Part shown: one piece after another, positions 17,059 to 46,934 of the stretch
Numbering within the stretch: position 1 is the first letter of the stretch
How the letters are laid out: each line of letters opens with the position of its first letter
DNA from: Dimorphilus gyrociliatus
Lineage: Eukaryota; Animalia; Annelida
Reading direction: 5' to 3'
Assembly (NCBI GenBank): GCA_904063045.1
Contig: CAJFCJ010000023.1
Location: forward strand, 372,001-436,000
Length of the DNA stretch: 64,000 nt
The notes under the pieces: model-generated
What the model was told of the DNA's origin: nothing
Databases searched by the model: none
The model's input: only the letters and a program-made list of their open reading frames with translations
Program-made: the position numbers and the translations under genes

Positions 17059-19703
17059 AATCTTTCCAACAGCTTTAACGAATATATCGGGCATCTTAAT
17101 TAGTGTCATCTCTTTTTTATGAGATCAACACAATTGTAAAAATAAACAATACGCAAGTACTTTAGAGTAATTTATCAAGAGAAATAAAATACAATTAACC
17201 AGAAATTATGAGTGAAAATAAGACATCTTCCCTTTGCTTGATTTATTTAAAAGAAAGAATATAACAAGTCAAACGATGTGATTAAATCTGCTGGATAAAA
17301 TGCAGAAAGTAACACACTTTTCCAAACGTTTCCATTAGGAAAATGACTGGAAAATAGGCGTAAATCAATAAAGGAAACTAATTTTCCAGTCCCCTTAAAA
17401 TTTTGGTATGAAACGTTTTACATATTTTCATTTTTAGTTCTACCTGAGAGATTACCAAAGAGTCTTAAATATAGGAAAGTAAAAAGTCAACTCTTTCTTT
17501 CTTTCTACCTTTCTTTCTTGTCCTCCCAAACTTTATTGGGATTCCCATTACACGACTACTGTAGTAAAGTAAATAGTCGACATATAAAATTGATAGAGAG
17601 ATTATAGTTGACATTACTGCAACAAATTGTAAATAGTATAAAACAGTACTTGATACAAGTGTACTAACTTTTATGCGACAATGACACTGTATTTAAAGCG
17701 TGTCAGGGTTATGCATAATACAGTATGTCTAGTAGATTCGGCTATATACAATACCTAAATTATCCAGCAAAGCAGAAAAAGGAAAGGATAGAGCGTTTAG
17801 AAAAGAAATCTAAAAAGTTACCTTGCTTAGAGAGTGTCATACTCTTGGCGACATGAGAAATCATTTGTATAAATATATCGACAGAGTCCCTAGATAAAAT
17901 ATGAGTCTAAATGATATAATTATTTAAATATTCTCACGAAATTGAGTAAAAGATAAGCGATATATAGTTATAAGTGGAGTACCACCTTTTTTATCCTCTT
18001 CCTTTGCTCTACCTTTTTCTATCCTTATTCGCAAATGTTTGCAGGAAAAAAGTAGGTGATCGGTTTTATTGAACAATCAAATACAAATATAATATGACCT
18101 TTTTGTCTCTGCTTTCAAATGAAACCTTGCGAGTAAATTAGACTGACAGTTATATATACTGTATATATATTTTTATGCATATACTTGTATAAATGTAAAA
18201 GTATACGCGCAGACAGACAGACAGACAGACAGACAGGCGGAGACAAAGGGGGCAAAGACAGGAAGAAATAAATAGAGAAAACAATTTTTTACCAAGAAAT
18301 GCTAAAGGATTTTTTTTTGTTATAAATGCACTAAAATATTGCAACCGAAAAGGTTGCGAAATCGAGTAAAAAGACAATAGAATAACACTAATTACGATAT
18401 GGAGATACAGGGAAAAAAATGTAAAAAGAGAAAACTTGGATGATAAAAGTGACAGACATTTATAAAGTAGAATATGCGCTCTCATATAACAAATAAATAA
18501 TTATACGTCATTATTAATAGTTTGTAAAGGCTTGATGCAGTTTTGATCACATGATCTTATCCGTTACAATTCCCTGTGACTTAATGTAACAGAGGGGAGG
18601 AGAGGAGGAGTAGAAAAGGAGATCATAAAAGTACTATAGAAAAGTAAAACTTTAACAATTTGTTGCGTAAATAAAGTAAGAAATGGTAAATTATTATAAT
18701 CTTTGCAGATAATCCCACGGACACGCTATGGACTTCATACCTGTTGAACGTCTCTGGTACAGTGTTCTTTATTGTTGGAACAATTGGGAATATCCTATCG
18801 CTGATAGTTATTGCCCGATTGAATTACTCTTCGGAGAATTCATATAGATATTTTTTGTGTGCGTTGGCAGTTTTTGATACCAGCGTACTCTTTCACAGAT
18901 TCTTACCAAGAGTATTCGAATCGTACGGAATATCAATATTCGTAAATAACTTTACATGTGCATTGTTTAAATTTACTCTTCATTCTTCCTATCTTCTCTC
19001 CGGTTGGTTGATTGGTTGCATTTCTGCAGAGAGATTTGCCGTTGTTTTCTTTCCATTTGTAAGAAAATCTACAACATTTAACAAGAGAGCTAAACTATTT
19101 ATGGTTGTCGTTGTCATTACTGGATTCCTCTCTCAGAGTTATAGGTTGTTTATGGTCAAATACAAGATGCGACTCAGGACATGTCAGCCTACAAAGACCT
19201 ACAATAACATCTATTTAAACTTACATATATATCTTTATCAACTAGTCGAACTGGTCATTCTTCCTGGCTTATGCATCTTCGTATGTAATGTCGCTATATT
19301 GTATAAGATTCATACCTTGCCATCTTTGAATCTAATTGAGAATAATAAGAGAAATGGCGAAGCTAGATATAGAAAGGCGACATTTATGCTGTTGTTTATA
19401 TCCTTTTTATATCTGATAACTGTTTTACCAGGATTAATTCACAGTATTAGTATCATCGTCGTCTATAAACTCTACGGAAAGGAGACTGCGGGAAAAGTAT
19501 GGAGAAAAAGAGAATTACAAGATTTATTCGAGTTTGTGGCTGGATTTAATTACGCAACAAATTTCTTTGTCTACATTTTCTCGGCAAGAAAATTTAGAGA
19601 CGAAATCAGAGTTTTAATAAAATGTAAAAAAAGGAGATTTATTCAAAAGAAACCTTTTGTAGCCTTTTATAAAAGGGTTTCTACTTCAAAAACTGATTTA
19701 TAA
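13034..19703 (+). CDS. Class A (rhodopsin-like) GPCR, peptide/FMRFamide-receptor-like (~339 aa)
   Basis: Main exon 18709-19703 follows a tttgcag acceptor. It has 7 TMs with GTIGN, LAVFD, SAERF (DRY equivalent) and NYATNFFVY (NPxxY equivalent). The proposed first exon 13034-13058 (MNVSNTSG, two N-glycosylation sequons, phase-1 gtatgt donor) matches the required phase; this join is inferred. Confidence 0.85.
13296..13325. repeat. (GA)n microsatellite
   Basis: Direct reading of the sequence. Confidence 0.95.
16823..16846. repeat. (AAT)n microsatellite
   Basis: Direct reading of the sequence. Confidence 0.9.
17007..17058. repeat. (CT)n microsatellite, slightly interrupted
   Basis: Direct reading of the sequence. 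Confidence 0.95.
18210..18236. repeat. (CAGA)n tetranucleotide microsatellite
   Basis: Direct reading of the sequence. Confidence 0.9.
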
Positions 19704-33040: not shown

Positions 33041-36444
<3,404 letters not shown>

Positions 36445-36559
36445 TAAGAAGAAAATGGAGAGATAAAGAGGAAGAAGGGCAGAAAAGTAAACACAATATA
36501 TAGTATATTTATTTATTTATTTACTTGTTATGTTATATTTATTCAATATTATTTATATG

Positions 36560-36595
<36 letters not shown>

Positions 36596-36602
36596 CATTA
36601 TC

Positions 36603-36635
<33 letters not shown>
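36560..36635. repeat. Interrupted (AT)n microsatellite
   Basis: Direct reading of the sequence. Confidence 0.9.
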
Positions 36636-36639
<4 letters not shown>

Positions 36640-37913
36640 AGTACACAGAATATAGTTATCAGGACGAAAGAAAATATTGATGAAAATCAATAATTCATAA
36701 ATTAAGGCCTATAAAATATTAAACTATAAGAATAAAGAGAATTCAAGAAAATAAATTTCTATTCTACTATATATTCAATTAGAAATGATTAAATAAATAT
36801 ATGCTTACAGTATATAGGTTTATATGTATACATAAATGAATATATACTATGTATATGTTTGTGGATATAACATAGGTATATAATGTTCGCGACGTTACAC
36901 GATATAAGAGAGAGAGAGAGAGGGAGAGAGAGACAGAAAAAGACAGAGAGATAGAGAAAGAAAGAAAGAAGAAGACAGAGAAAGGAGGGAGCTGGATAGG
37001 AGAGAGAAGGAGGGAAAACCGAAGGGAGAGGTGAAATTAGACACGCGTTCAGCATATACTCTTTTCTTGAATTACAATGAAATTTGTACACTCTATACCT
37101 TTATTTGTTCATAAAGATATAAACGGTTTATTCGTTTAATACAACATTACTACTACATAGACGTAATTTATGAATTGATTGATATAACAAAGATATTACA
37201 TATATATTTGTTCATAAACTGTATATACATGTTTTTTTGTCTACGTTTGTTTTATTGTTGATAAATTCAAGTGTCGATTTGAATTTATACGTTTCAAAGT
37301 ATGTTTGTATATGTACATTTGTTTGTGAGTAAGTATGTACTGGCTCTATGTAAATATATACAGAATATACTCTGTATATAGTGAAAAAAGAAGAAAACCC
37401 GTGGTGCCATAGGTGCAATACACGACTAAGAGTTTAATTTAAATAAATAGATAATTTATGCTAATTTATTCACGAGAAGTATTCGTATTATCACTATTAA
37501 TATTATTATTATCTTAACTCGTAGATAATCATCAAGCTTTTCTCCTTCACTCTTGTATTCTTGTCTTTTTTTTAAATATTAAAAATCAATAGTATAAAAG
37601 GAATTATTGTTTATTCTGAGAGAAAAAATACATTCGGTAGATAGGCTGAGATAGTGTTTGCATAACGAACAAGAATTTATACTGATACACTAGAACAACA
37701 TGAATGTATGTACAAAGAAACTAGTATAATAATAAGGAAAAGATGATAAATAATAAACATTTTTCATTTCCTTCGGAAATTCGATTGGCCATCCTGCTGA
37801 GAGCTAAATACAACTTAAACTATACCATATACAAATATTCTATCTTTTACTTTTTCTTTTTATATATAATGAAATAAAATTGATAAAACTAATATTTAAT
37901 ATATTTATATAGA

Positions 37914-37980
37914 GAATATATATATATATATATATATTAGATATATACTGTATATATATATATATATATACATATATATA
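37914..37980. repeat. Interrupted (AT)n microsatellite
   Basis: Direct reading of the sequence. Confidence 0.9.
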
Positions 37981-40214
37981 CTTTTATCTTTATTTAGTAG
38001 CAGATATACTTTCCCCCCGTTTTCAACCTTACCCATTGATGGTCTATTTGCATAGATTCTCTCCTGCTATTATACTCTTTGTTTACTATAAATAAAGTAC
38101 ACTTTTTTATATTATTTATAAAATTTTGTATGCTTAACGATGAACATTGGCGATCGGAACGAGTATAATGAACCGTCTAGAAGGAAACGTACATAATAAA
38201 GCCATAATCGTCTATTGACACTAGGTTTGAAAGAAAACAGGAAGAGACGAATTTGACACTTGTATACGCGCGATTATATCGAATTTAACGACTGTTTTCT
38301 TTACAGCCTGACGAAATGTTTGAAGAGAAGAATTATTCTGTTATAACAAAAGGGAAAAAGAGAGGAGAAAAAAAAAATACTTTACGCCCTGCTCTCCTTA
38401 CAAATATTTTTTATTATATGTGTTCATTTAGAAAACTTCCAATTATTAATTAATTAATTAAGTCTATATGTTTATCATTAATAATTAATTTATTCATATA
38501 ACTTTTTAATTGTTTAGGAAAGTATAGAGAAAAACGTCTTTAAATATTTAATAATTTACTATTATTTAATAAGGAAACTTATCCAGTCATTCGCTTAATA
38601 CTTCCTTAACAAAATACTATCTTTGCCCTTAGCAGATATTATCTATTACAAAACATTCAGTTAGTGTTTACCTTCGCTTTTCCCTTTATTAACCTAAAAT
38701 TTGCCTCTCTCCCCTCTCTTTTTTCTTTTCCTGTTCGCAAAGCCTATTTGTTCTTCTTGCCTATTTTCTTCTTCTCTTCTCTTCTCTCTCTCTTTCTTTC
38801 TTTCCCCGTCCTTTTTTTCTGCCCCTTTCTTTCCGCCTCTCTTCTATGACCTTTTGTCTATTGCGCTCACTCGTCGTAGCAGGTGCAAATATATAAAAGG
38901 GAACGGAAAAGATTAAGCTTACGCTGACCGCCCGTTATCCAAACGTGAACACGTGTGGCCCGAGTTCGAGTGCAATTATCATCTATTAGCCATTCAATAG
39001 ACGAGTGGATTGGGAAATGGTGGCCCGGATTGAAAATTTCCTTGAAGTGGACCGTGCTAAGAGTATGAGGTGAGAGAAAAAGTCACGTGACCAAATCCTC
39101 GACGCCTTTAAAGGGTATGTAATGTAAATGAAGGGAAAGAAGGTGGTAAGAAGTGTAGGGGGAGGGCGCGAAAAAGAAGTTGAAACGACTTCATAATATA
39201 ATAATATAATTATAAAATCTCTTTGCCGATCGCCTCTAGTTATTGACTCGCACCAGTCGCTTTGAAAAAGCCTAATCCGGCAATTTGTTAAGAATTATTT
39301 ATTCAAGATTAACCAAACACTTTGACATTATTTTGCTAATTGCGCTCTGTACATATAATTAATAATCGACAATAGTTTGTTTTCGTTTGTTTTCAACCGA
39401 CGAAACAGGGGCCTTTTCGTTTTCACACCTGCGTTAATGGAATATTTTCGCTCCCTTCTGTCTGCTTCGAATCTCTTTTCCGTTCTGTCAACTTTTTTCT
39501 CTTTCCCCTCTCTCCTCTAAGAAGAGTGCACTTTCTATCCTTTCTACTATTTCTCCCTCTTCTTCTTCTTCTTCAGGCCTTCTGCACAAGTTTTAGCCTA
39601 GAATTCCATGGCATAAAATCACTAAGGCGCTAAACGGTTTACTAATTTGCATTGGGTGCTTTGCTTTGATTTAAATCAGTTGGACTTGCATTCAAAGTGG
39701 GCGCCAAACGTTTTTTTTCCCCTAAATAAAATATATATACGAATGACTATACAGGTTATGTATATAAAGAGGGTGGTATAAGAATACAGGCGCAACTTGT
39801 CACCTCCTCGCCAGGCGCTTTAATCGAACTAAAGTCAATAGAGGAGATGAGCAAAAGAGATTTTCAATGAATCCAATTTGATCCAACTTGCTAGCGAGAC
39901 GTCGACCCGGTTAAATTGTGTCAACAAATGAAGAGGATCAACGGGCAATTGTGATAATTTTTATGAGTTCGATTTGTTGACTATCCCACTTTTTTGCATA
40001 CCTTTTATGTCTTTGCGATCTATGTTCTAAGTCTCATCGTACGGTTCGCGTTCCTTTATTAACCGACAGACGGCGCTCTTTCTCACCAACGTCCAATGAT
40101 TATATATTTGACCACTAGATGACTCTTGTTGTCAGTTATTATTAAGTACCAATGATAATAATAATACAAGTATAAAGTAATATGAAAGACAAATAAAAAT
40201 TGTTAATCCTTTAT

Positions 40215-41073
40215 TTATAATTTTTCTGAAAATTGTAAATTCTTCTCTTGGTTCTCCTTTTCCTTTTGCTTCACACCATCTTCAAGTCTTTTTAACTTTC
40301 TGCCTAGCGAAACGTAAACGAATCCTAATATGATTAAATTGAAAAACAAACATAAGCCGGCGGCAATTGCAACTGATATCGCTACTGTCAAAGTCGAGTT
40401 ATCATCGTTATATCTTTTTTTGTCTTTTTTGTGTTTCTTTTTTTCCTCATCTGCATGCAAAGAAGTTTCAGTTTTTTATGACCGCTTTCTCCTTTCTCTT
40501 TCATTTCTTACCTTTTCGCTCGGCAACCAAGCTGTTCGGACCTGGTGGACCTGGAGGACCTGGTTTACCAGCAGGACCTGTTGGTCCATATCCTGTAGGT
40601 CCGGGCTCCCCGGTGAATCCTATATTACCAACTTTTCCAGTTGGTCCTGGCGCTCCAGGCATTCCCATGTGTCCAGTAGGACCAGTCGCTCCAGTTGCGC
40701 CTCGATAGCCAGCTTTAGTATCAGGATAACCTACAGATTTTTCATATTACATCTCTGTTAAGATTATATAGGGAGATTTTCTAACTTTTTGACCTTTGCT
40801 TAGACCACGATGCAAACATTTTAGTCAATATTTAATAAGTAAAAAAAGAGAAGCATACCTGTATCACCCTTCCTCCGAGGTGGTGTATTTGGCGGTAGAG
40901 GGGTTTTGGCCGAAATTTTCCATATATTTAGGACTGCAAAGAAATATTTTAACGTTTGAAGATTCAAATTTATCTCAAAATGAGATAATAATAATCTTAA
41001 AGCAAAACAAAGTAAAAATATACTACAGACCAATTAAGAAGAGAGAAAGGATAATAAGGTGAGAGAAATTCAT
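40215..41073 (-). CDS. Small type I transmembrane collagen-like protein, copy B (~190 aa)
   Basis: Exons 41073-41031 (MNFSHLIILSLFLI; weak gtctgt donor), 40933-40859, 40730-40512 (Gly-X-Y run) and 40450-40215 (Lys-rich linker, TM VAISVAIAAGLCLFFNLIILGFVYVSL, tail RKLKRLED). All introns are phase 1; total 573 nt. Confidence 0.8.
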
Positions 41074-41701
41074 CCTCTCTCCACACAACCAATAAAATAT
41101 CAATACGAAGAGTGTTCATAGAATTTGTCTTTTTTAGCCTAAATCTTAGGCCACTGGCTTTCTTACTATCGTACCTGGTACGTAACGTCTCCTCTAGACC
41201 TATGATTTACTATTGAAGTCAAATAAAGGTATAATTCTAAAGTTTAACAGCGATTATTATAAAAGAATTCCAGAAAAAGCGACTGGCCTTGTAGATTGAA
41301 CTTTTGCTGTTTTTAATCTGATCAGAGAAAGGTTACTATAATACAAACTGGAACAATGCCTTAGTTTGAAGGGTTATTTTCATTTGAGAAAGAGTAGGAC
41401 TAAAAGGTAAAAGAAAAGAGGGTATAATAGATATTCTTCTTATAAGAGCCACCAAAGAAGATGGAAAAGAAAGAACTTTTAAAACTAAAAGATAAACATC
41501 TCTCATTTGTAAGGAAAGAGGGTAAAAAAGGGGCGTGCAGGGGATTAACCTAAATTCTAAAATGTATAATGATAATCGAACAAACTGAGCGCAAAAGGTA
41601 CTTCTTAATATAAATATATGTGTATATGTTTATCGAATTATCCTTTATAATAGGTGAAACAATGTGCAAAAGAAATTTGATTATCTAAAAGTTTTATTCA
41701 T

Positions 41702-42363
41702 TCAAGAGAAACTACTCTTCTCTGTAGAATATTTAAGCATATTTTCCAATTTTTCTATTCTTCCCTTCATCGATATGTAAATAAAAATAGTTATTGCCAT
41801 ATTAAAGAACATGCAACAAACTGCAGCAACCGAAATGGAAATCGTTAAGGTTATTGTTAAATTCTTATTGTCGTCGTCATCGTCGTCGTTTTTACAATCA
41901 CCGTCTCCTAAAAAAGCAAGAAAATTGTCATATTGGTATTATTAACGATTAACAGATATAGTACTGAGGCTGTCTGGATTTTCGAATGTTCCCGGTGGGC
42001 CAGGAGGTCCCGGAGGTCCTATCGCACCCTGCTTTCCAGGTAAACCCACACCAGGACTTCCTGTATATCCCGTAGCTCCAACTCTACCCTTCATTCCTAT
42101 AGAGCCTGGAGCCCCTGGATATCCCATTCTACCAGTATGACCAGTTGCACCTACATATCCAGTATCACCTTTTCGCCTACTCGGGGCTGGGGGACCAAGC
42201 GATTCAGAGCCTATTAAAGATGAGGAAAAAAGTGTATACATATATTATATGTATAATATGTATTACATATATGTTTAAGAATTCATAATAAGTGTATTTA
42301 TAGCAATAGATCGTTGTAATTGACTGAGGAAAGGAATTTGAATAAATAAAGCAAAAGTTTGAA

Positions 42364-42394
<31 letters not shown>

Positions 42395-42639
42395 TTCTGA
42401 TATGCGAAAGAGAAAAATTAATAAATGGACTATTGCTCGAAATGCAATTATTAATTAATATAAACTATTATAAGATGTAGAATGAAAATGTTACCTTTGG
42501 GGCCTGGAAAACCAGAATTTCCTTGGCAATCTGTTGTATTGAAACTAACTGCTCTTAACCAAATAAATTGATTGAATATTTAATACTTACAACTTAAAGC
42601 GAGTAAGCAGCAAGTCAACAAAGACAATTTTAAGAGCAT
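41702..42639 (-). CDS. Small type I transmembrane collagen-like protein, copy A (~178 aa)
   Basis: Exons 42639-42591 (signal peptide [16 protein letters not shown]), 42530-42495, 42210-41965 (Gly-X-Y run) and 41907-41702 (poly-Asp linker, [31 protein letters not shown], tail RIEKLEN, TGA). All introns are phase 1; total 537 nt. Confidence 0.85.
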
Positions 42640-44701
42640 GATTAAAACTTTGATAGAGTTTTGATAACTGACGAACGAAAACTAAAATCACTTATAGAAA
42701 AAATGTTTAATATAACTTTTTCTTCAAATATTGAACAATATCATTATATTAGTCATTCATTCCTTAACCCTACTAGTATCAAGATTTCTCTTTTTCTCCT
42801 TTGATCTTGTAGAGGGCAGTCCGCGGAGAGCATACTCTTCCCAATCAAAAACAAAATAAATAGTCTTTATTTAACATTTCTAAGAAATCACTTTTCGCGA
42901 GTGGGCAAAAATGCATAAAATTCTGTTTGTCACCTAGGCCTAGTAGAGAAAAAATGGAATCTGTAGGAAGAGAATATAAAATAGAGATAGCGAATTAGAG
43001 GGTATGGTTGCCAAAGAGATGTTGTTTAACTCAGTGAACGTCGGATAGGAATAGTTGGGTAGGTATGAAACAAAAGAAGGAAAAGAATAGAAAAGAATGT
43101 GATTTATGTTTGAATGATTGAACAACAATGGTAGATAGATTTTGTATGATTTCAATAGTAAAACAAAACTTTCCAACTAGTGAGACTATATTAGACAGAT
43201 GGCGTTGTATGCAAAAATACGTCCAATGAGTAGAGACGGTTTAATTGGTGGGGGGCAAAAGGGGCATAATTAGTTTGTTTAAAGTATAAGAGGTTAATTT
43301 GTTGGAAATGAGGAGACATTGGCATTTTATGGTTAGGAATGAAGGAAATATTTTAACTCTGAAAGCATAATTCATATATATTTATCCATATGCCATCCAC
43401 GTGCAAAGATCTGAGTTCATTTAGGCCAAAATCTCAGCAAAAGTAAGTTTTTTTGAATATATTTTACTGAGTTTTAAGTTGGATTTTACTTGACCTAAAT
43501 CTTATCGTAACAGACTGTCATATAATTGTATAGGCTGAAGTTACTTTTGGCCATTATTTATAACTGTATCGTATGTATGAATCGATTGATACGCTTTGTT
43601 TAAAGTAAAAAAGAAATTGAGAGAGATAGGAAGGAGATTTGTAACGATACATTTTCTGATATAAACACTCTCAATATTTGTGTGTGCGTGTTTTTGTGTG
43701 TAGATACAAATATCATTAATTCAATCAACCTGTCAATCGATTGATTATTTCCCTATATTCATAAGATGGCAATGATTTTGGAATACGGTTAGTTTTTATT
43801 AAATATCAAATTTGATGATAATACTATAATGAATTATATATATATCCGTAATATACCAATATCAACTGTATATAGATATGAAATATTTTTTTACAATAAC
43901 TTTATTTTTATTGTCGAAGCCTTCTTTCCATATATTTTATATTTTTTAAAGCTATAAAGTCTTTAAGTAACGTCAGGGAGAAACTTCTTACGTTACTGAC
44001 AAATTTACAGGCCGCACAGAAAAACGGTCGTGATGAATACTTTAAGGTAAAAAAAAATCATAATAGAAGAATTAAAAACAAAGTAAAAAGCTTTACAACG
44101 CTAAATTTCACAATATATATATATATATAGATATCTATACAGTATATACCTTCTGTATAAAGTATCTATATATATATATACAGTATATATATATATCTAT
44201 ATTTATAAAATATGTTTATATACAGTAGTTGTTGTAAATAATATTGCACTCATCTCTTCTCTTGTTTTTACTATACTGTGTTTTTTTTCTATATTCAGTA
44301 AATTTTGAATATTTACTTTTCTTCTACCAATCACCATCATTATTAATCATTATATTATATTCATTCATTTATCAATCATCATTGAGTGTTATGCTTCTGT
44401 TTCTATTGTGCCATTTACTAATACTCTTAGTAAAATTCTTACTCCGTTTGCTCAACATGATAAATTAAAAGAATGTAATCAAATAAGAAGAGAAACCGTT
44501 GAATGCTATCTAGTATGTCTCTTGAATAGCAATACATTTTCACTTCCTTTCTCTTAAAAAGCAGTTATTGCTATTTTCTCCCTTTATATTCTATTGGTCT
44601 TAAACGCCTCTGATTTTTCTCTATTTCTTTCTTTTCGTAAATATGGCGATTATTATTATTAATAATATAACTTGTTTTGTTTGTCCGTTTATTCAAATTA
44701 G

Positions 44702-46934
44702 GAGAGGGACGGTTTAAACACTTCGATTCTAGTCATTCAAAGTTTGTTGGTAGAGGCAAAGGATAAATTTAAAAGAATGAATGAACACAATGGCCAGGAT
44801 GAAAATGGATCTAGCAAGACAAAACTAAATAATAACAATAATAACAGTAGTAATAGTAATAATAATAATAATAATAAAGAGTACGAATCGTTAAAGAGGA
44901 AGAAAAGTTTTAAAGCTTGTAAGAGATGCGAAGAATTGAAAAGTCAAATAGAAACTTTAACGGATGCTTTCAAAGGTATAAACAGAAGTATTATTATTAT
45001 TAATTAACTATATAAAATATTTACAAATGTTATTGTATTATGTTTGCTTAGACGAAAAGAGAAATTTGAGATTGGATAAAATTAATCTTATGCACGAAGT
45101 TAGAAAATTAAGGAAATCTCAGATGGGTAATAGAATTATTGATATTTTATTATAATAACTTTAAAGTTAAAACATTGGTTTTAGTGTAAGAGTAAATATT
45201 TCCTATTCGTTGCAGAAAGGGAAATCTTTGTTGAGAATTTCTGCCGTCAATACGAACAGAAAATGATTAAATTTGATGAAACTCTTTTGGAAACTATTCG
45301 CGAAAAGAAGAATTTGGAAATTCTCAATTCAGAATTGAAAAAAGAAAAGGAGAATCTCGCTAAAAAAATCGATACTAGCAGACAACAATTAATGCTTGTA
45401 AAGTTTCTTTTACTTTTTCCTTTGATTAGGCCTACATTTGCGCTCTCTCTCTCCGTCTCTCTCTCTCTGTCTCTCTCTCACATTCAAAACGCTTTTTTCC
45501 CTTTTAATCACTTAGGCAAATTCGAGAATTTTACTATTGGAAAGGGAACGAACTACGTCGACCAAAAAGAAAAAAGGACAGACGAGAGCTCATTCGGCGA
45601 GCAATTTAAGCCCCTTGGACCGTCATCTAATCATTTCTGAGCCTATTGAATCGCTGATTAATAGGAATATAAACGGAAAGCCAATTTCCTCCGAAAGCTT
45701 ACATTCTTTCAAAAATCGAGACAAAGACGTCCAAAATGAGGAGAGTTTAAAAGCTACAGATGGAGCCACCGATAAGATTGATCGTAAACGAATGGAAGAG
45801 GATCAAGTTCGGCAAGTGGTAGACACTTGGCAAAAATTGAGTAAGAAGAGGACGAGCTTTTCAAATATTTCCAAGTTTTTCGGTAGAAATCGAAATAGTA
45901 GAAGCGATTTGAGAAAGACGAAAAGTCTTCGAGATTTTACAGTCGATGAAGTCGCCGCCTGGTTTGATCAATTTTTAGGTATGGCTTGCTATAAAGAGGA
46001 GATAAAAGATAGCGTTTGCGATGGAAAGGTAAACTATAATATAATATATTAGCCAATCGCAAGACTAAACGATTAATTAATTGAGTTATATAAACATTAA
46101 TTAACTAATTAATTAAAATTGGTTCATTTTAAAATGAATTGGGTTTGTTATCTTAATAGTTTAACTTTAATTTATAACAAAACAGATGCTTTTGGGTGTT
46201 GATACTTCGGCGTTGAGTTCAATCATTAAGTTCAAGTCACCTTTACATTGTAGAAAAGTAAAAATCGCTTTGGAAAGATACAGAAACGATACCTCGAATC
46301 CGTATTCTTTAACGGATTACATAGACAACTATTGGGTATCGACTACGTTCCTGGAACACGTTGGACTTACTAGATACGCAAATAAATTTACTGAACAAGT
46401 AAGATGGCGCTTGAAATAGAATAATGAAGTAATTGAATCATTCGTTTGTCTCTTTCCTTTCTTCAATATAGTTGATTGACGGTCCAGTTTTATTATCATT
46501 AGTCGAAAGAGATTTGGAAGAGTTTTTAGAAATAAACGAATCTTTCCATAAAATTAGTATCATTTGTGGTATAGCAATGATGAAAATTCTCTCAATGAAT
46601 AAGAACGTGAGTATCCCATTTTTGTATGATATGATCTTATAGTTTTTCTTATTATTCTTATGTAAAGTTGTTGGAAGAGAGGCAGAAAAAGTGCGAGACT
46701 ATTGACGAAGATTTATTGGTTTGGAGCAATTATCGTGTTCGAAAGTGGTTAGATAGTATAAATCTTCAACAATATTCGGATAAAATTGTAGATAGTGGTA
46801 TACACGGTGCAGTTTTCCTCCTTGACGAACACTTCCAAGCTGAATATTTAGTGGAAAAATTAGCTATTAGTCAGAGAAGTTTGAGGAAACACCTGTCGGA
46901 GCGCTTTGAAGTTCTTACGAGATCTGCCAGGTAG
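44702..46934 (+). CDS. KAZN: Kazrin-like protein (coiled coil plus three SAM domains); 5' end unresolved
   Basis: Exons 44702-44975, 45052-45126, 45216-45397, 45516-46028, 46186-46398, 46472-46606 and 46668-46934 join in frame. The triple-SAM motifs (PLHCRKVKIALERY, YWVSTTFLEHVGL, LIDGPVLLSLVERDLEEFL, LVWSNYRVRKWLDSINL, SGIHGAVFLLD) match the kazrin/liprin SAM module, and the coiled coil resembles kazrin. A possible upstream 36-nt exon lies at 44011-44046. Confidence 0.85.

Follow-up and report, generated by a model that had tools for sequence, protein, structure and literature searches.

Two neighbouring genes, A and B, are predicted on the minus strand of the window, the whole 64-kb stretch of Dimorphilus gyrociliatus DNA that was analysed. 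Each comprises four exons, and the spliced frames are open and encode 178 residues in gene A (537 nt) and 190 residues in gene B (573 nt). All six introns have GT-AG boundaries and all six lie in phase 1. The features of the locus, including a short non-coding element conserved on a genomic contig of a second species (L001), are as follows.

42858-42895, minus strand: conserved non-coding element, 87% identity over 38 nt with an 18-nt identical core, against L001 positions 253-290
42591-42639, minus strand: gene A exon 1, ATG and hydrophobic signal-like segment, ending in phase 1 at donor gtaagt
42495-42530, minus strand: gene A exon 2, 36 nt, ending G-P-K-(G)
41965-42210, minus strand: gene A exon 3, RRKGDT followed by the collagen helix
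41984-42169, minus strand: gene A collagen helix (residues 43-104), 14 triplets, a G-V-G break and 6 triplets including GPPGPPGPP
41702-41907, minus strand: gene A exon 4, Cys and poly-Asp linker, NLT sequon, membrane helix, 25-residue tail and TGA stop
41780-41842, minus strand: gene A predicted membrane helix, within exon 4
41693-41698, minus strand: AATAAA polyadenylation-type hexamer, 4 nt past the gene A stop, read directly
41031-41073, minus strand: gene B exon 1, ATG and first part of the signal-like segment, ending in phase 1 at the weak donor gtctgt
40859-40933, minus strand: gene B exon 2, end of the signal-like segment (candidate cleavage site ISA|K), Pro-rich stretch and RRKGDT
40512-40730, minus strand: gene B exon 3, carrying the collagen helix
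40534-40710, minus strand: gene B collagen helix (residues 47-105), 14 triplets, a G-Y-G break and 5 triplets including GPPGPP
40215-40450, minus strand: gene B exon 4, Lys-rich linker, NST sequon, membrane helix, 33-residue tail ending SEKL and TAA stop
40317-40379, minus strand: gene B predicted membrane helix, within exon 4
40210-40215, minus strand: AATAAA hexamer overlapping the TAA stop of gene B

The junction between exons 2 and 3 of gene A is spanned by four short Gly-X-Y triplets, and the counterpart of exon 2 in A', the gene A orthologue of the second species, is 48 nt long, keeps the phase and likewise ends in GPK. At the place on L001 that matches the weak donor of gene B exon 1 stands gtttgt. 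The AATAAA hexamers at or beside the stops of A and B are as expected of last exons in a compact genome, and A' likewise has AATAAA directly past its stop. Neither a third gene copy (tblastn, with the whole window as subject) nor an Rfam match (scan of 36000-42232) was found. The region belongs to an AT-rich animal genome (GC about 32%), and the neighbouring ORFs, judged by eye, resemble GPCR, immunoglobulin-domain and galactosyltransferase genes. Plus-strand ORFs across the collagen exons represent the antisense shadow that Gly-X-Y coding sequence usually casts. One sequencing run of unknown kind contains a fraction of 0.55 of the words of the region, roughly the share of two transcripts with their untranslated regions, which proves nothing.

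The two predicted proteins share a common plan of signal-like N-terminus, Pro-rich spacer, RRKGDT, collagen helix, linker, N-x-T sequon, membrane helix and tail. The N-terminal hydrophobic segment begins at residues 5-8, comprises about 10-15 hydrophobic residues followed by candidate -3/-1 cleavage positions, and reaches 2.4 (A) and 3.5 (B) in its best 10-residue Kyte-Doolittle window; the call of a cleaved signal rests on the -3/-1 rule and the length of the h-region. Exon 3 matches the Pfam Collagen family (PF01391) at E 2.6e-9 and 37.1 bits in A and at E 2.4e-9 and 37.3 bits in B, the gathering cut-off being 27.2 bits, and with Gly-X-Y repeats above the Pfam threshold both proteins belong to the collagen superfamily. 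The helix contains 20 Gly-X-Y triplets in A (14+6) and 19 in B (14+5), its one-residue G-X-G break occupying a matching alignment column in the two proteins. Only 9-14 of its residues are imino acids, and the stability of so short and imino-poor a helix as a free trimer is uncertain. No Pfam domain besides Collagen was detected in A or B, including any lectin, C1q or other head domain.

Beyond the collagen helix, the linker of A consists of a Cys and a poly-Asp run, and that of B is Lys-rich and includes K-K-R. The membrane helix comprises 21 hydrophobic residues (Kyte-Doolittle 2.27 in A and 2.51 in B), and carries CMFFN (A) or CLFFN (B) at its centre; the charged tail behind it measures 25 residues in A and 33 in B. 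No more than about 7 residues separate the N-x-T sequons from this helix, a distance probably too short for glycosylation. Cysteines are present at positions 10, 11, 18, 115, 141 and 142 of A and at position 146 alone of B. The membrane exons of A and B align with 41% identity over 49 residues (E 5e-14) and are, by this similarity, paralogous. A preliminary description of this DNA had proposed most of this anatomy, and the analysis agrees with it in the lengths, motifs and exon ends of two adjacent four-exon genes, all of which were correct and the exons placed exactly. It also found a charged linker, a C-terminal membrane helix and C-x-F-F-N in both proteins, RRKGDT in both genes with the expected count of about 20 triplets, and, in the Pfam scan, the proposed lack of a lectin or C1q head.

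A HMMER profile built from the two membrane exons returned a single match among 1.84 billion representative proteins, P0001 (58 aa, E 5e-13). This sequence is an ORF fragment of a gene B orthologue encoded on the genomic contigs L001 (3344 nt) and L002 of the Logan assemblies. L001 carries the entire pair, A' and B', on one strand and in the same order as in D. gyrociliatus. A' comprises exons 585-630, 715-762, 902-1147 and 1232-1428, encoding 178 residues, and B' comprises exons 1933-1978, 2087-2167, 2252-2305, 2384-2623 and 2771-2988, encoding 212 residues, or 194 without the 54-nt exon. All introns of A' and B' are GT-AG and in phase 1, and the position of the weak donor of B exon 1 is kept. 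Protein identity is 60% between A and A' and 51% between B and B', with dS of 1.3 and above 2, respectively; at these saturating values of dS, the dN/dS ratio of A is 0.26 and that of B is 0.19. The duplication that produced A and B is older than the split of the two species.

Comparison of the window with L001 by blastn and tblastx, which took in the letters on either side of 42233-42274 in gene A intron 2, aligned the collagen and membrane exons alone, together with the 38-nt non-coding element. This element lies about 220-260 nt upstream of the gene A ATG and is the sole non-exonic match between the species; it is a candidate cis-regulatory site. The GPCR ORF of the window is 74% identical to a Logan ORF, which probably comes from the same relative as L001.

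The four proteins A, A', B and B' retain a strict glycine at every third residue over 13-14 and 5-6 triplets, the G-X-G break in a single alignment column, and (GPP)2-3 at the membrane-proximal, C-terminal end of the collagen helix. Also kept in all four are one mid-helix triplet whose X residue is basic (GRV, GKQ, GKV or GKI), an N-x-S/T sequon ahead of the membrane helix, a Cys four or five residues ahead of the membrane-helix Asn, and A-A, F-N, I, Y and S positions in or just past that helix. A and A' share in addition the linker Cys, the poly-Asp run and a nearly identical tail ending SFS, the A tail containing one conserved Tyr, and B and B' share a C-terminal SEKL.

Two of the motifs that had been read from D. 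gyrociliatus do not extend unchanged to the second species. C-x-F-F-N, present in A and B, reduces across the four proteins to F-N with the upstream Cys, and the dibasic RRK of RRKGDT, again present in A and B, is replaced by RPK in A' and SRK in B', K-G-D alone recurring. The K-G-D of B' is located in the preceding exon and not at the aligned site. These replacements led to the rejection of RRK as a conserved convertase site. A charge-matched A/B heterotrimer, pairing the acidic linker of A with the basic linker of B, was also rejected, as the linker of B' is of mixed charge.

The topology of the proteins was assessed from the distribution of hydrophobic and charged residues. The net charge of the 15 residues ahead of the membrane helix is -5 in A and -6 in A', and that of the 15 residues past it is +1 or +2 in all four proteins. 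AlphaFold2, given a four-exon alignment with the B exon as its first row, predicts one helix; pLDDT is 87-94 in its membrane part, and the tail is modelled less confidently. The N-terminal segments of signal length, the C-terminal location of the sole long hydrophobic helix, the K/R residues after it and the acidic run before it in A and A' lead us to infer that A and B are type I single-pass membrane proteins with the N-terminus outside. A GPI anchor is excluded by the tails past the membrane helix, which in all four proteins are charged, conserved and 25-34 residues long. By its features, exon 4 comes closest in the ESM Atlas to the tails of small proteins with a single membrane pass (syndecan/neurexin type, stannin and opalin), but the scores are all at or below 0.84 and make these a lead only. 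No significant periodicity favouring one face was found in the conservation of the membrane helix among the four sequences (373 of 2000 shuffles reach the observed value), leaving the idea of a trimer interface without statistical support from these sequences. The preliminary proposal of an undescribed family with a C-terminal anchor is partly supported by an architecture that is kept under purifying selection in a second, diverged species, its topology being deduced from sequence.

It is conceivable, though unlikely, that the membrane form is a precursor from which the rod is shed by cleavage of the charged linker, yielding a soluble ligand or matrix component in the manner of the furin-shed MACIT collagens. 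Shedding is the rule among type II membrane collagens (PMC4678570), and the K-K-R of the B linker could provide a basic site. Such a site is absent from the poly-Asp linkers of A and A', however, and the K-K-R of B has been lost in B'. An RXXR furin site was not found in the linkers of A, A' and B', and B has just K-K-R. The conservation of the tails also argues for a lasting role at the membrane: the A tail is 79% identical to that of A' (dN/dS 0.155), above the N-terminus and linker of A, and the B tail is 41% identical to that of B', compared with 55% for the N-terminus.

A less probable alternative, to which we give little weight, is that the gene models are in part mistaken: the collagen exons would end as small secreted collagens, with the membrane exon not joined to them. 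Read-through into intron 3 would continue for 8 codons in A and 12 codons in A' before a stop, and a short secreted isoform is possible on this account. Exon 4, however, lacks its own start codon and signal and is open from its acceptor in the phase left by exon 3, and its order, phase and place after the collagen exon are kept in both genes and both species at saturated divergence. It is also the best-conserved part of gene A, with 84% nucleotide identity over 189 nt. The survival of exon order, phase, open frames and protein constraint through saturating divergence is strong comparative evidence that the gene models, including the join of collagen to membrane exon, are real. Equally improbable is that Gly-X-Y merely forms a flexible Gly/Pro spacer in a small protein of an internal membrane (secretory granule or ER/Golgi), a reading that would suit the shortness and low imino content of the helix and the lack of a trimerisation domain recognised by Pfam, but is opposed by the strict glycine period, conserved break column and terminal GPP repeats, the selection pattern expected of a triple helix.

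Beyond the second species, no relative of the membrane exon was found by HMMER run without a length limit on the 1.84 billion representatives, a word search with the four-exon profile returned P0001 again and nothing else, and a scan of metagenome contigs with the membrane exon gave no match. As a control, the GPCR ORF of the window failed to find itself, the collection being without the proteome of this genome, and the second species is represented there solely by ORF fragments from raw assemblies. That A and B are missing from the collection is therefore uninformative. The profile spans 66 columns, half of them membrane helix, and its reach is short. Given such a profile and a collection without proteins of the genome itself, absence outside the clade is weak evidence, and it is in this weak sense that the sequence relatives so far appear confined to D. 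gyrociliatus and one relative. No described type I membrane collagen was found in the literature that was searched. Orthology to such a family, an outcome named in the preliminary description as refuting its proposal, was not encountered in the sequence searches or in that literature, with the same weakness attaching to the absence of relatives.

The reading that we consider fairly likely is that A and B are real, anciently duplicated minimal type I membrane collagens, which would serve as an anchoring or adhesion stalk to a collagenous matrix or cuticle, possibly with signalling as an added role. Cleavage of the signal peptide would leave the N-terminus outside the cell, and the C-terminal helix would stop transfer, so that the tail (25 residues in A, 33 in B) remains cytosolic, as suggested by the helix itself, the K/R residues after it and the conservation of the tail. 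Polar Asn residues drive the association of membrane helices, and three chains may be joined in this way through the membrane helix, whose mid-membrane Asn is invariant, together with the juxtamembrane segment; the conserved juxtamembrane Cys beside the poly-Asp run of A may help the chains to associate. GPP-rich C-terminal ends nucleate collagen folding, and the (GPP)2-3 block of these proteins would start the triple helix, which would then zip from C- to N-terminus as in fibrillar collagens. The product would be a rod of about 18 nm (62 residues x 0.286 nm) that stands on the cell surface and has a single intrinsic kink.

Since the proteins lack a globular head, any binding would have to sit in the rod or at its tip. 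The candidates are the K-G-D or X-K-G start of the helix, X-Lys-Gly being a lysyl hydroxylase site, and the basic X-position residue of the one mid-helix triplet found in all four proteins. The conserved tails may couple the rod to cytosolic partners. A wider proposal, which we put forward tentatively and hold to be rather less probable than the stalk itself, is that A and B represent an undescribed class in which an Asn-bearing membrane helix takes the place of the trimerisation domain and initiates C-to-N folding of the rod of about 18 nm, and that such reversed-polarity collagens belong regularly to the cell surface of annelids, perhaps of lophotrochozoans, where they would connect cytosolic partners with matrix or cuticle.

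If true, these C-terminally anchored collagens, each below 200 residues, would provide the smallest membrane-bound triple helix in nature, and would permit a direct test of whether three chains can be brought into register, and their folding from C- to N-terminus initiated, by a membrane helix alone. This has a bearing on collagen folding, on synthetic collagen design and on how cells are tied to the collagenous cuticle or basal matrix in small soft-bodied animals. The reach of the finding is limited by the family having been seen so far only in D. gyrociliatus and one relative.

The predicted anchor polarity of A and B is the reverse of that in every well-described membrane collagen, and their size is minimal. 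To our knowledge, the membrane collagens that have been well studied are all type II, and their folding starts at an N-terminal coiled coil beside the membrane. Type II topology, a coiled-coil NC1 and furin sites for shedding characterise the MACIT and other described collagenous membrane proteins, and those of the MACIT type have an N-terminal cytosolic domain, a signal anchor and several COL domains over hundreds of residues (PMC4678570). A and B have neither an N-terminal cytosolic domain nor a signal-anchor helix, their long helix being C-terminal. They would resemble the type II set (collagens XIII, XXIII and XXV, COL-99, collagen XVII, SR-A/MARCO, ectodysplasin and gliomedin) in being single-pass proteins with a membrane-adjacent triple helix, and trimerisation in that set is thought to begin beside the membrane, as is proposed for A and B. 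Unlike the type II set, A and B carry their anchor at the C-terminus behind what appears to be a signal peptide, possess one helix of about 20 triplets, and are without a coiled-coil domain detected by Pfam or a conserved furin site; the sequences of the two groups show no relation outside Gly-X-Y.

Cnidarian minicollagens have a helix of about 15 triplets with polyproline flanks and terminal Cys-rich domains, and are secreted proteins without a membrane helix (PMC12549020). They share with A and B a very short collagen helix as the core of a small protein, whereas A and B lack the Cys-rich domains and possess a membrane helix and tail. Nematode cuticle collagens have an N-terminal membrane helix, homology boxes with RXXR and Cys clusters flanking the collagen helix. 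By direct reading, the four proteins considered here differ from them in having no flanking Cys clusters and a C-terminal anchor.

Closer in outline are two microbial systems that are unrelated to A and B. The STP-C488 protein of herpesvirus saimiri, of about 100 residues, combines some 18 collagen-like repeats, which serve oligomerisation, with a C-terminal hydrophobic anchor; it has no signal peptide, its repeats are cytosolic and it contains TRAF/SH2 docking motifs. The combination of collagen repeats with a C-terminal anchor is the likeness to A and B, and there is no sequence relation. The streptococcal proteins Scl1 and Scl2 present a C-terminally held collagen-like rod with the N-terminus outward, an LPXTG sorting signal and a globular N-terminal V domain. 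A and B differ from them in having spliceosomal introns and in lacking both LPXTG and a head, but would resemble them in being a rod anchored by its C-terminal end with the N-terminus pointing outward.

Conservation at the nucleotide level between gene A, the first of the two minus-strand mini-collagen genes, and its orthologue on L001, a genomic contig of a second, diverged species, was highest in exon 4, which encodes the linker, membrane helix and tail. This stretch and the other features of the locus and its surroundings were as follows.

Features, in window coordinates unless L001 is named
41702-41889, minus strand: stretch of gene A exon 4 with high nucleotide conservation against the orthologue
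42858-42895, minus strand (L001 253-290): conserved non-exonic element, from a cross-species match
L001 2252-2305: additional exon of the gene B orthologue, 54 nt, phase 1, Pro/Ser-rich, ending in SRK
18747-19700, plus strand: rhodopsin-type GPCR ORF, whose matches carry PF00001
38700-38850 and 39440-39570, minus strand: regions downstream of gene B with long GA/GAA tracts, rich in purines
44744-46934, plus strand: upstream neighbour of gene A, on the opposite strand

The exon 4 stretch is 84% identical over 189 nt, with low pS in the membrane helix (0.23) and tail (0.41), against a remainder of gene A that is saturated at synonymous sites (pS 0.6-0.7). Selection acting directly on the DNA or RNA sequence is one possible cause; a chance effect in a small number of codons is another. 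Outside exons, the only match between the pair locus and L001 is the 38-nt element (87% identity), a possible promoter or enhancer that includes an 18-nt AT-rich core identical in both species and lies 220-295 nt upstream of the gene A start codon in both.

In the alignment, the additional exon of the gene B orthologue corresponds to the final part of B exon 2, and a separate K-G-D-N-G is encoded in exon 2 of the orthologue itself. Because skipping these 54 nt preserves the frame, this could be a cassette exon.

The GPCR ORF has a 74%-identical counterpart in a Logan assembly and was itself not found in the searched protein collection; the D. gyrociliatus proteome is therefore missing there, which bears on every claim of 'no relatives' for this genome.

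Downstream of gene B, the stretch holding the purine-rich tracts is higher in GC (0.36) than its surroundings and ORF-poor, with no ORF of at least 110 aa and no match in Rfam. On the other side of the pair, the neighbour of gene A is divergently oriented, with approximately 2 kb between them, and encodes a poly-Asn run and coiled-coil-like stretches, together with exons that, by eye, look like tandem SAM domains of the liprin/kazrin type.
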